Positions 48,701-53,071 of a DNA stretch of 64,000 nucleotides are shown here, one piece after another (within the stretch, counting starts at the first letter, position 1; every line of letters begins with the position of its first letter). Source of the stretch: Oopsacas minuta. Its lineage: Eukaryota > Animalia > Porifera. The notes under the pieces are model-generated. The model saw only the letters and a program-made list of their open reading frames with translations. It was not told the origin of the DNA and searched no databases. The DNA lies in the NCBI GenBank assembly GCA_024704765.1, contig JAKMXF010000144.1, positions 62,001 through 126,000 on the forward strand. The letters run 5' to 3'. The position numbers and the translations under genes are program-made.

Positions 48701-49447
48701 CTATAGATCTGTACAGGTTTTAGAGGCCAGTTGGCTCATGACCGATTCCTTCTTGTCCAGAGGGTGTTGAAGGAAGTTCCCTGTAGAGTCCTTGCAGGTC
48801 AGTGTGGGGGATGAACTGGAGAGGCTCATTTTAGTGGCGGCACGTACGTCTCCCGATTTAGCACGGATCAGCAGGTCCCTGGGTTGTGTGTCTCTTGAAA
48901 TTGTGTCTGGGAGGGATTGTTGGGAGTTACTCCTGTTTCTTGCACTCTCTGCTTTGAGATAGGAAGTAGATCGTATCCGGCTGACCTCGTCCAGAGGTGT
49001 GACTCTCTTCCTGTGTATTCTAGCGTTAGGAGATGACTGTAAGGATCGGATAAGAGGGGGACACGAGGGCGGTCCCATTTCCTGTATCCCAGGGAGTGAT
49101 GACTTGAGAGTAGCGTCATCTATTGACAGAGAGCTCCTTGATAAGGAGGACTGTCTTTGTGCGGGTTCTGTATATCCGTCCAGGCTTATGAGAGATAAGG
49201 AGTTACGTTTCGCCGGATCAGGAGAGGGAGACTCGCTAGTATCAGACTCCAGTCTCTTGAGTTCTTTAGAGGGTGTGAAGTGTGACACCAATGCATCAAT
49301 CTCTCTACACACATCATTAACACGTACTTGCATGTACTCACGGTCTGCTTTTAGCTGTTGACACTCCTTTCGGATTACAGAAATCTTGGAGTCTAGGTCC
49401 AACTCTTTAGGAGTACAGGGGGCAGGGGTAGCGGTCTGTTTCGGCAT
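48701..49447 (-). CDS. Hypothetical protein: N-terminal coiled coil, Ser-rich disordered region, C-terminal TDL
   Basis: 248-aa ORF; heptad stretch LDSKISVIRKECQQLKADREYMQVRVNDVCREIDAL; possible class I PDZ ligand. Confidence 0.65.
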   Translation of the reverse strand: MPKQTATPAPCTPKELDLDSKISVIRKECQQLKADREYMQVRVNDVCREIDALVSHFTPSKELKRLESDTSESPSPDPAKRNSLSLISLDGYTEPAQRQSSLSRSSLSIDDATLKSSLPGIQEMGPPSCPPLIRSLQSSPNARIHRKRVTPLDEVSRIRSTSYLKAESARNRSNSQQSLPDTISRDTQPRDLLIRAKSGDVRAATKMSLSSSSPTLTCKDSTGNFLQHPLDKKESVMSQLASKTCTDL

Positions 49448-49594
49448 TTATCAGATGGTTATTCTCAGATATTTTATACTATGTTTATGCCTACTACTAT
49501 GACCTAATACGTAAATATCCTAGTAACCATGATGTAGAATGGAATGTGTATTACAATTCTAATTCAATAAGCATGGTATGTAGCTATAGCACAG

Positions 49595-50266
49595 ATGGCT
49601 GGTATCAATATTGATGTGAATGCCCCCACAATACCCATGAAGAACCCGATCTCCTTCCTCCAGGAGCTGTCACAGATGCATCGGTTCCCTATGCCGGAGT
49701 ACGAGGAGTCACAGGGGAATTATAATGAGTTTGGGTACACCGTGAAAATAAATTTCAGTCATGACCCCGCGAAGGTGTTTAATTTCTATGGCAACGGAAA
49801 GACAAAAAAGAATGCAAAGACCCGATCAGCTGAGACAGCGATTGAGTACCTCCGGCGGAACCTCCCCCAGGTGTTTGAGGCTCCTCCCCCTCCGGAAGTG
49901 ATTGTGGACCTGAATGAGCTGTCACCCATGGTCCGTGACATGCACCTAAAGAAAATGCCTCAGATGTCATCTAACAAACAGACATTCTCCGCGAAGAGTG
50001 AGAGTCAGCTGGTCCATGAGTCTGAAGAGTTGGGACATCAGAAGTTGGGAATAGACGTTGGTAAACTAATCCAGAGAGGACGCATGGACAAGGGACTAAC
50101 ACAGAAGGACCTAGCTGGGAAGATAAACGAGAAACCAAATATAATAGTAGACTATGAGCTAGGGAAAGTGGTCCCTAATATTCACATTATGTCTAAGTTA
50201 GAGAGAGCACTAGGCATGAAACTTAGAGGTCCAAGTGCCGGACAACCATTTGGCTCAAAGAAATGA
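49595..50266 (+). CDS. dsRBD-EDF1/MBF1 fusion protein, intronless
   Basis: aa ~16-86 dsRBD ([11 protein letters not shown]...PEY...FGYTVKI...[18 protein letters not shown]); aa ~125-223 MBF1 C-part and HTH (SNKQ...[54 protein letters not shown]...[12 protein letters not shown]). Confidence 0.85.
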
Positions 50267-50391
50267 CAAAATATAGGTTTGCTTAGCGATTAATAGTCCG
50301 CATCGAACAGTCCACTATTTTGTATATCTTATTTGTTTGTTTGTTTGTTTGTTGTTGTTTCCCTTATTAATAACATTTCGAAGCCAATTAG

Positions 50392-52674
<2,283 letters not shown>

Positions 52675-52723
52675 ATATTGAGTAGTATTTTGTGTTTATT
52701 TGTATATTTATTTTTTGATTTTT

Positions 52724-53055: not shown

Positions 53056-53071
53056 TAATAGGTTAATTAGT

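Follow-up and report, generated by a model that had tools for sequence, protein, structure and literature searches.

EDF1, known in yeast as Mbf1, is among the most conserved ribosome-associated factors of eukaryotes and has an almost invariant architecture; its ordinary work is to sense ribosome collisions, suppress frameshifting, and recruit GIGYF2-4EHP. An ORF of the sponge Oopsacas minuta departs from this architecture, with a double-stranded RNA-binding domain (dsRBD) standing in front of an EDF1 core. Is this a genuine gene, how far does it extend among sponges, and what would such a protein do on the ribosome? We addressed these questions with a 64,000-nt stretch of contig JAKMXF010000144.1 (the window), whose positions are used throughout.

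A single ORF joins a dsRBD to the C-terminal part of EDF1

The coding sequence divides into three segments:

49595 to 50266 (stop included), + strand: dsRBD-EDF1 fusion CDS, intronless, 223 aa (ORF, Pfam, continuous RNA depth)
49646 to 49852, + strand: dsRBD, aa 18-86 (Pfam dsrm, AF2, Foldseek, PDB matches)
49805 to 49819, + strand: KKNAK, aa 71-75, RNA-binding region 3 of the dsRBD (sequence)
49853 to 49963, + strand: Pro-rich conserved linker, aa 87-123 (invariant residues, dN/dS, start of the hhalign match)
49964 to 50263, + strand: EDF1/MBF1-homologous part, aa 124-223 (hhalign, phmmer to PDB EDF1 chains)

Pfam recognizes dsrm at aa 18-86 (32.6 bits, E 1.3e-7; gathering cut-off 23) and HTH_3 at aa 160-210 (36.1 bits). 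It returns no match to the MBF1 N-domain PF08523 at E<=1, and the last third of that domain (NKQ...EELxH) is all that can be aligned to the fusion. When solved structures were searched with phmmer, aa 115-219 matched aa 37-141 of human EDF1 without a gap (E 3.5e-29), and yeast Mbf1 also aligned to the C-terminal region. The first dsRBDs of Loquacious and TARBP2 (8DFV, 7ZPJ, 5NPG, 3LLH) are the best match to aa 9-93 in both sequence and fold. In an AF2 model built from a 44-sequence alignment, the dsRBD adopts the α-β-β-β-α order (α1 18-28, β strands 35-39, 46-52, and 62-68, α2 71-89; pLDDT 75-87) and the HTH forms four helices (pLDDT ~90), with the middle part of the protein poorly defined. 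Foldseek retrieves for this model ribosome-bound Mbf1/EDF1 chains together with many dsRBDs, the latter with TM scores of up to 0.83.

A profile comparison (hhalign) with 36 canonical EDF1s locates the junction. Homology runs from aa 124 to the C-terminus and corresponds to EDF1 columns ~46-145 (100% probability, E 2e-38); upstream of aa 124, linker included, no homology to these 36 sequences was found. The EDF1 part carries NKQ at aa 127-129, His148, and the HTH at ~153-206. We also considered that a dsRBD had simply been joined to the N-terminal side of an EDF1 that is diverged yet complete, since aa 87-223 comprise 137 residues, the same as EDF1 12-148, and MAFFT pairs ...EYLRRNLP of the fusion with ...TYLRKKTP of EDF1. 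The equal lengths had prompted this reading, which is unsupported because the hhalign homology begins only at aa 124. Pfam, phmmer, AF2, and Foldseek thus agree with the original prediction that one ORF joins a dsRBD, a Pro-rich linker, and EDF1 from NKQ through the HTH. The accompanying estimate that about 40 N-terminal MBF1 residues had been replaced was fair, the profile result putting the figure nearer 45.

The fusion is transcribed as one mRNA with a spliced leader

Transcription of the locus involves three further features:

49570 to 49571, + strand: AG trans-splice acceptor, the mRNA body starting at 49572 (X4 RNA contigs)
49572 to 49594, + strand: 5'UTR, 23 nt, with an out-of-frame uATG at 49573 (sequence and RNA acceptor position)
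50392 to 52700, + strand: JNK-type MAPK gene, multi-exon (RNA GT..AG joints, TPY, Pkinase ORFs)

The stretch is present in four public runs from one sample, and our evidence consists of their assembled contigs. Three runs behave as DNA, their contigs passing through the JNK introns, and two of these three show the adaptor ends of Nextera mate-pair libraries. We identify the fourth, X4, as RNA because its contigs show GT..AG joints at every JNK intron. Summed contig depth in X4 lies in the thousands across 49469-50303 versus 547 over the upstream gene, and no RNA joint falls inside the fusion ORF in the contigs of this run.

X4 contigs cover the entire ORF and join a leader at 49570, one of them reading ...AAAAAACTTAC and then matching the window from 49570. 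The fusion mRNA is therefore trans-spliced to a leader 23 nt before the ATG. The dsRBD is thus not spliced out, and transcription begins upstream of it. The leader 3' end is not encoded within the window. The same 3' end (...TAAAAAACTTAC, then AG) is joined both at 49570 and at 53069, before a prefoldin gene (ATG 53072); spliced-leader trans-splicing operates in this genome. A published study reports spliced leaders in the glass sponge Aphrocallistes vastus (PMC10282587). The leader, the compact layout with few introns, and the make-up of the libraries (one RNA-seq, one paired-end, and two Nextera mate-pair, released in 2023) agree with the O. minuta data of Santini et al. (PMC10280926).

The short 5'UTR contains two small reading frames. 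The uATG at 49573 opens a frame of 13 codons that runs past the main ATG to a stop at 49612-49614, and a minimal ATG-TAG uORF lies at 49578. These elements may exert translational control, or the main acceptor may sit nearer the ATG. A minor internal transcript start or initiation at Met116, Met121, or Met124 may occur as well.

Two features of the DNA assemblies could be read as signs of a mis-join. All three DNA runs have contigs that break off at 49923-49929, and a half-depth contig carries a 40-nt replacement at 49853-49894. The breaks arise from a SNP at 49925, whose bubble is bridged by short contigs, and both the RNA contigs and the RNA depth run across the region. RNA and independent assemblies are continuous here, so that a mis-join is ruled out and the artefact reading was rejected.

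The variation itself is of two kinds. Two of the DNA runs have contigs with the SNP (49925 C>A, Pro111Thr), and the RNA contigs have only C. The contig of approximately half depth, found in all three DNA runs, matches 49817-49853 and 49894-49923, the intervening 40 nt being replaced by CATTCA; a further DNA contig matches 49929-49970, and the flanks of both extra contigs are unlike the window. Either a haplotype variant or a second, incomplete copy of the piece that codes for the linker could explain them. Neither was seen in RNA run X4.

All three segments are under purifying selection in close relatives

A word-index search returned six close orthologues with the same 223-aa layout and 59-85% identity. 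The genes were located in four other ENA assemblies, on long contigs with high coverage, and on one Logan contig. The gene order VPS37(Mod_r)-PBP-SERF / hypothetical-RRP36-hypothetical (other strand) / fusion / JNK / prefoldin / ENTH is identical in these four ENA assemblies.

All close orthologues begin with MAGINI and retain the dsRBD residues L22, Q23, E24, K71, K72, A74, and K75. Synonymous sites among these orthologues are saturated or show dS >=0.75. Where it can be measured, dN/dS takes values of 0.03-0.09 (dsRBD), 0.04-0.16 (linker), and 0.06-0.09 (EDF1 part), which imply strong purifying selection on all three segments. The linker follows the pattern VF.APPP...VD.N.LSP.VR.MH.KKMP, with a PPPP stretch at aa 97-100 in the O. 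minuta protein, and its residues V93, F94, P97-99, V104, D105, N107, L109, S110, P111, V113, R114, H117, M121, and P122 are invariant among the close orthologues. On this sequence evidence, the linker appears constrained and is no loose spacer.

The spacer of 147 nt that separates the fusion from the divergent upstream gene (window 49440-49594) holds the motif AACCA...GAATGGAATG.GT, which is common to the orthologous loci L001 and L002 (5846-6000) and may be an element of a bidirectional promoter. At one orthologous locus (L009, 2771-4136 of ERZ26869290:ctg321988) two inverted copies of the gene form a palindrome in which the flanking ORFs are mirrored too. The assembly most likely folded back on itself here, an artefact that accounts for the truncated 211-aa protein P0006.

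The fusion recurs in demosponges

To delimit the family, we ran a profile search with six full-length members against 1.84 billion representative proteins. Matches containing both domains belong solely to this family (P0007, P0048, P0050, P0051, and exon-sized fragments), and three of these two-domain proteins, P0048 (218 aa), P0051 (197 aa), and P0050, lie beyond the query's own cluster. The other matches of >=195 aa among those checked are MBF1+HTH_3 proteins with a spurious extension or bacterial multi-HTH proteins. A word search with the dsRBD only gave no relatives outside the family, and the ESM Atlas holds no large cluster with both domains.

A word search seeded with P0048 identified a family member in Amphimedon queenslandica, XP_011405617.2 (A0A1X7UBF6; 203 aa), which contains dsrm (36 bits) and HTH_3, lacks PF08523, and is automatically named 'EDF1 homolog' in RefSeq/UniProt. 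Together with P0048, P0051, and the P0195 cluster, it shows the same succession of dsrm, EPPP linker, NKQ, and HTH as the window protein, collinear over the full length. The dsRBD of XP_011405617.2 is 40% identical to that of the window protein (E 2e-19) and its EDF1 part ~43%. The MAGINI... extension is confined to the glass-sponge-like clade, and the basic motif is KK(E/I)SK in demosponges versus KKNAK here.

Gene structures differ between the two groups. The demosponge genes have several exons, the first of which encodes the dsRBD and PPP at locus L012, whereas the gene in the window is intronless. At L012, in a genome with long introns, the P0195 cluster represents exon 1 (dsRBD + EPPP) of a five-exon gene. 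P0048 derives from a demosponge-type mRNA contig (L011) that contains the entire ORF and a poly(A) end; its genomic counterpart P0207 diverges directly after EPPPSMAA, which places an intron there. On a 900-kb contig, P0097 and P0049 correspond to two exons of the same gene (L010, 5001-7038), separated between ...NHPE and IFSAPP... by an intron of ~1.4 kb that falls exactly at the dsRBD-linker boundary. L010 is a more distant orthologue with different neighbour genes, in which eight residues including the KKM segment (KKW in EDF1) are missing. P0050, from an ENA contig of 1440 nt, has 258 aa, with a degenerate EDF1 core between two nearly identical dsRBDs; either the gene underwent a tandem or partial duplication, or the contig is chimeric.

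The dsRBDs of the window protein and of the demosponge members are 34-40% identical in an alignment that extends from Met1 through the PPP linker. Because dsRBDs and linker align collinearly and are clearly closer to each other than to Loqs/TRBP, the fusion probably has a single origin. The window protein has every feature of the family, namely the collinear dsRBD, the EPPP linker, NKQ, and the HTH, and its dsRBD is nearest to those of other members. In a tree of EDF1 cores (100 columns), the glass-sponge-like fusion clade has a support of 99 and the demosponge-like clade 96, both on long stems; the tree does not resolve how the two clades relate to each other or where they belong among canonical EDF1s.

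The fusion is thus no novelty of this genome, as had been supposed, since the family spans glass-sponge-like and demosponge genomes. The architecture is also annotated already, both domains being recognizable in XP_011405617.2, yet it is confined to sponges and has not been described: a literature search found no paper on the dsRBD-MBF1 architecture or on the Amphimedon accession, in line with the initial statement that no such fusion was known. We conclude that the fusion represents a gene family of sponges that is old and conserved and has apparently escaped description.

The JNK neighbour belongs to a conserved gene block

Downstream of the fusion stop, and outside the feature itself, the JNK gene begins after a spacer of 125 nt. 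The original prediction placed the fusion directly upstream of JNK, which holds: GT..AG RNA joints define introns between 50495 and 52590, the TPY activation-loop motif is encoded in ORF 51492-51698, and Pkinase ORFs occupy the same place in loci L005-L007. This adjacency is part of a block of approximately ten genes that is conserved wholesale in the close, syntenic clade only. The two distant loci have no adjoining JNK gene, L010 having a methyltransferase and L012 STELLO upstream. The caution that the arrangement may be coincidental was therefore well placed, and we regard the linkage to JNK as coincidental.

Contacts to the ribosome are partly retained

Structures of EDF1 and Mbf1 on the ribosome place the HTH between h16 and h33, GQNKQ at 18S h18, and H70 of human EDF1 in a stacking interaction with Y107 of uS3 (PMC7486125). 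The fusion retains the corresponding residues. SSNKQ is found at aa 125-129, with N127 and K128 invariant and Q129 nearly so across fusion and canonical sequences; His148 aligns with H70, and every fusion protein but P0051 has this histidine; and the HTH residues show no variation relative to the 36 canonical EDF1s. Over the C-terminal ~100 residues, the fusion is collinear with and 43-58% identical to human EDF1 and yeast Mbf1 (6ZVH, 6ZVI, 7O81, 9F9S; PF08523 + PF01381), and like them it has NKQ, the histidine, and the cro/C1 HTH.

The N-terminal side differs. In EDF1 an N-terminal helix occupies the base of h16, where it abuts uS4 and eS30 near the mRNA entry; the conserved but delocalised residues 1-23 have been proposed to sense the neighbouring ribosome; and KKW (42-44) presents its aromatic residue to the mRNA (PMC7486125). 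In the fusion, which has 223 aa versus ~148 aa in EDF1/Mbf1 and whose core sits on a long branch, the dsRBD and the Pro-rich linker take the place of the conserved N-terminus, the h16-base helix, and the KKW/KKY aromatic. The last gives way to KKM-P (aa 119-122), in which Pro122 occupies the Trp position. No member of the fusion family, demosponge ones included, has an aromatic residue there, and at L010 the segment is deleted. The mRNA 'headlock' function may therefore be gone.

The dsRBD shares with those of Loquacious and TARBP2 the α-β-β-β-α fold, the α1 motif, and KKxAK. Its regions 1 (KNPIS.LQE) and 3 (KK.AK) are conserved from glass-sponge-like to demosponge members, the latter having KK.SK or KR.SK at the basic motif. 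In contrast to the Loquacious/TARBP2 proteins, the fusion contains a single dsRBD and no tandem array, and this domain is attached to a ribosome-factor moiety, whereas theirs are modules of Dicer partners. The His of region 2 (GPxH) is absent, Asn44 being aligned to it (Ala in P0004), a change that may weaken dsRNA binding. The long branches of the EDF1 cores in both fusion clades would be compatible with a changed function.

The fusion is probably a paralogue of canonical EDF1

Does the fusion replace EDF1 in sponges or exist beside it? P0028 is a canonical 145-aa EDF1 with MBF1 and HTH_3 domains, and its cluster includes XP_065917112.1 of Dysidea avara, labelled 'EDF1-like'. This 146-aa protein has an EDF1 core homologous to that of the fusion; it differs from the fusion in its full MBF1 N-domain (83.9 bits), KKF motif, lack of a dsRBD, and short branch among canonical EDF1s. 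The canonical EDF1 of Dysidea makes it more likely that the fusion is a paralogue than that it is 'the' collision sensor, an argument that spans two species, with the fusion in Amphimedon and the canonical gene in Dysidea.

Fusion and canonical EDF1 were not found together in one sample: SRR13686354 yielded canonical EDF1, and SRR12995586/7 the fusion. SRR13686354 contains two distinct canonical EDF1 transcripts in Logan contigs (L004 and L013), P0008 and the Dysidea-like P0028, so that the sample is mixed or the organism has two EDF1 copies. Among the matches of the word search, which recovers a small fraction of EDF1s, no canonical EDF1 lies on the long, high-coverage sponge-host contigs. 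The O. minuta genome paper (PMC10280926) yielded no canonical EDF1 either, a result that says little about its presence.

These negative results leave some room for the reading that canonical EDF1 was lost in glass sponges and that the fusion, as their sole EDF1, does the ordinary job with its dsRBD as an accessory anchor. The core residues that contact the 40S are retained, RefSeq names the Amphimedon fusion 'EDF1 homolog', the word search found no canonical EDF1 on the long sponge-host contigs although five related assemblies are in the database, and the published O. minuta genome has reportedly lost many core metazoan genes (PMC10280926). The word search is insensitive, however, and genes split by introns are not called on those contigs, so that absence means little; the canonical EDF1 of Dysidea implies that both genes coexisted at least ancestrally; and the KKW aromatic is lost. 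On balance, we consider loss of the canonical gene rather unlikely.

We are confident that the gene is instead an ancient, sponge-restricted paralogue of EDF1/MBF1 whose first ~45 residues have been exchanged for a Loquacious/TRBP-type dsRBD and a linker. In the simplest history, EDF1 would have been duplicated before demosponges and glass sponges separated, and the 5' exon or exons of one copy would have been exchanged for a dsRBD exon. The intronless gene in the window would then be a derived form that has lost its introns.

Discussion

Taken as a whole, the data incline us, by a modest degree, toward an expressed, sponge-restricted EDF1 paralogue that docks on the 40S subunit and contacts an RNA helix through its dsRBD. 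For the mechanism itself, as suggested by sequence and by the EDF1 structures, the case is somewhat short of even, and we offer it tentatively. The C-terminal 100 residues would dock to the 40S at the mRNA-entry side, with NKQ at h18, His148 at uS3, and the HTH between h16 and h33. The dsRBD, on its linker of ~35 residues, would add a sequence-independent contact to an A-form RNA helix. This might belong to the rRNA, as an exposed helix or expansion segment, or might be a duplex within the mRNA as it enters. Such a contact would substitute for the lost N-terminal ones and might alter the timing or tightness of ribosome binding.

A more specific proposal is that the dsRBD detects double-stranded or structured mRNA, of viral or sense-antisense origin, at the entry channel and directs it to collision-type quality control, with JNK as a linked component. 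The geometry would allow it, as EDF1 has its N-terminal side beside the mRNA entry, at the base of h16 (PMC7486125), from where a tethered dsRBD could reach the mRNA, and regions 1 and 3 of the dsRBD have been conserved since the glass-sponge-like and demosponge lineages split. Against it, a disome offers little room for a duplex between its ribosomes, and the fusion adjoins JNK as part of a conserved block of some ten genes, but not at L010 or L012. We regard this sensor as improbable.

The protein may, alternatively, act away from the ribosome, with its dsRBD as a protein-protein module, or as a nuclear co-activator of the MBF1 type or an RNA-linked adaptor. The third dsRBDs of TRBP and Loqs are such protein-protein modules, and the fusion lacks both the region 2 His and the MBF1 N-domain, the latter implicated in co-activator contacts, while the EDF1 cores sit on long branches. 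Protein-binding dsRBDs, however, usually lose KK.AK, which is typical of RNA-binding dsRBDs; in the fusion this basic motif is intact and conserved, as are the residues that contact h18 and uS3, which makes a role away from the ribosome very unlikely. Finally, an assembly mis-join, a pseudogene, or a chance ORF has next to no standing, because the same ORF recurs in at least six independent assemblies or transcript contigs with dN/dS <0.1.

The paralogue that docks on the 40S and contacts an RNA helix thus remains our preferred reading. In its most far-reaching form, which we consider a long shot, sponges would own a dedicated, ribosome-docked reader of duplex RNA, placed at the 40S entry or at an rRNA helix of the neighbouring ribosome, that triggers or tunes collision responses and in glass sponges maybe replaces EDF1. 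If true, ribosome quality control would have gained a new input, which possibly served early animals as an antiviral device. The surprise is tempered by the spread of the fusion beyond a single genome and by the presence of one member in public protein databases. Since the protein is small, its gene is intronless here, and an Amphimedon orthologue exists, these ideas are cheap to test. The sponge fusion is a candidate ribosome factor with an added RNA-duplex contact, and the exchange of the EDF1 N-terminus for a dsRBD constitutes a natural experiment on the role of the N-terminal third of EDF1.
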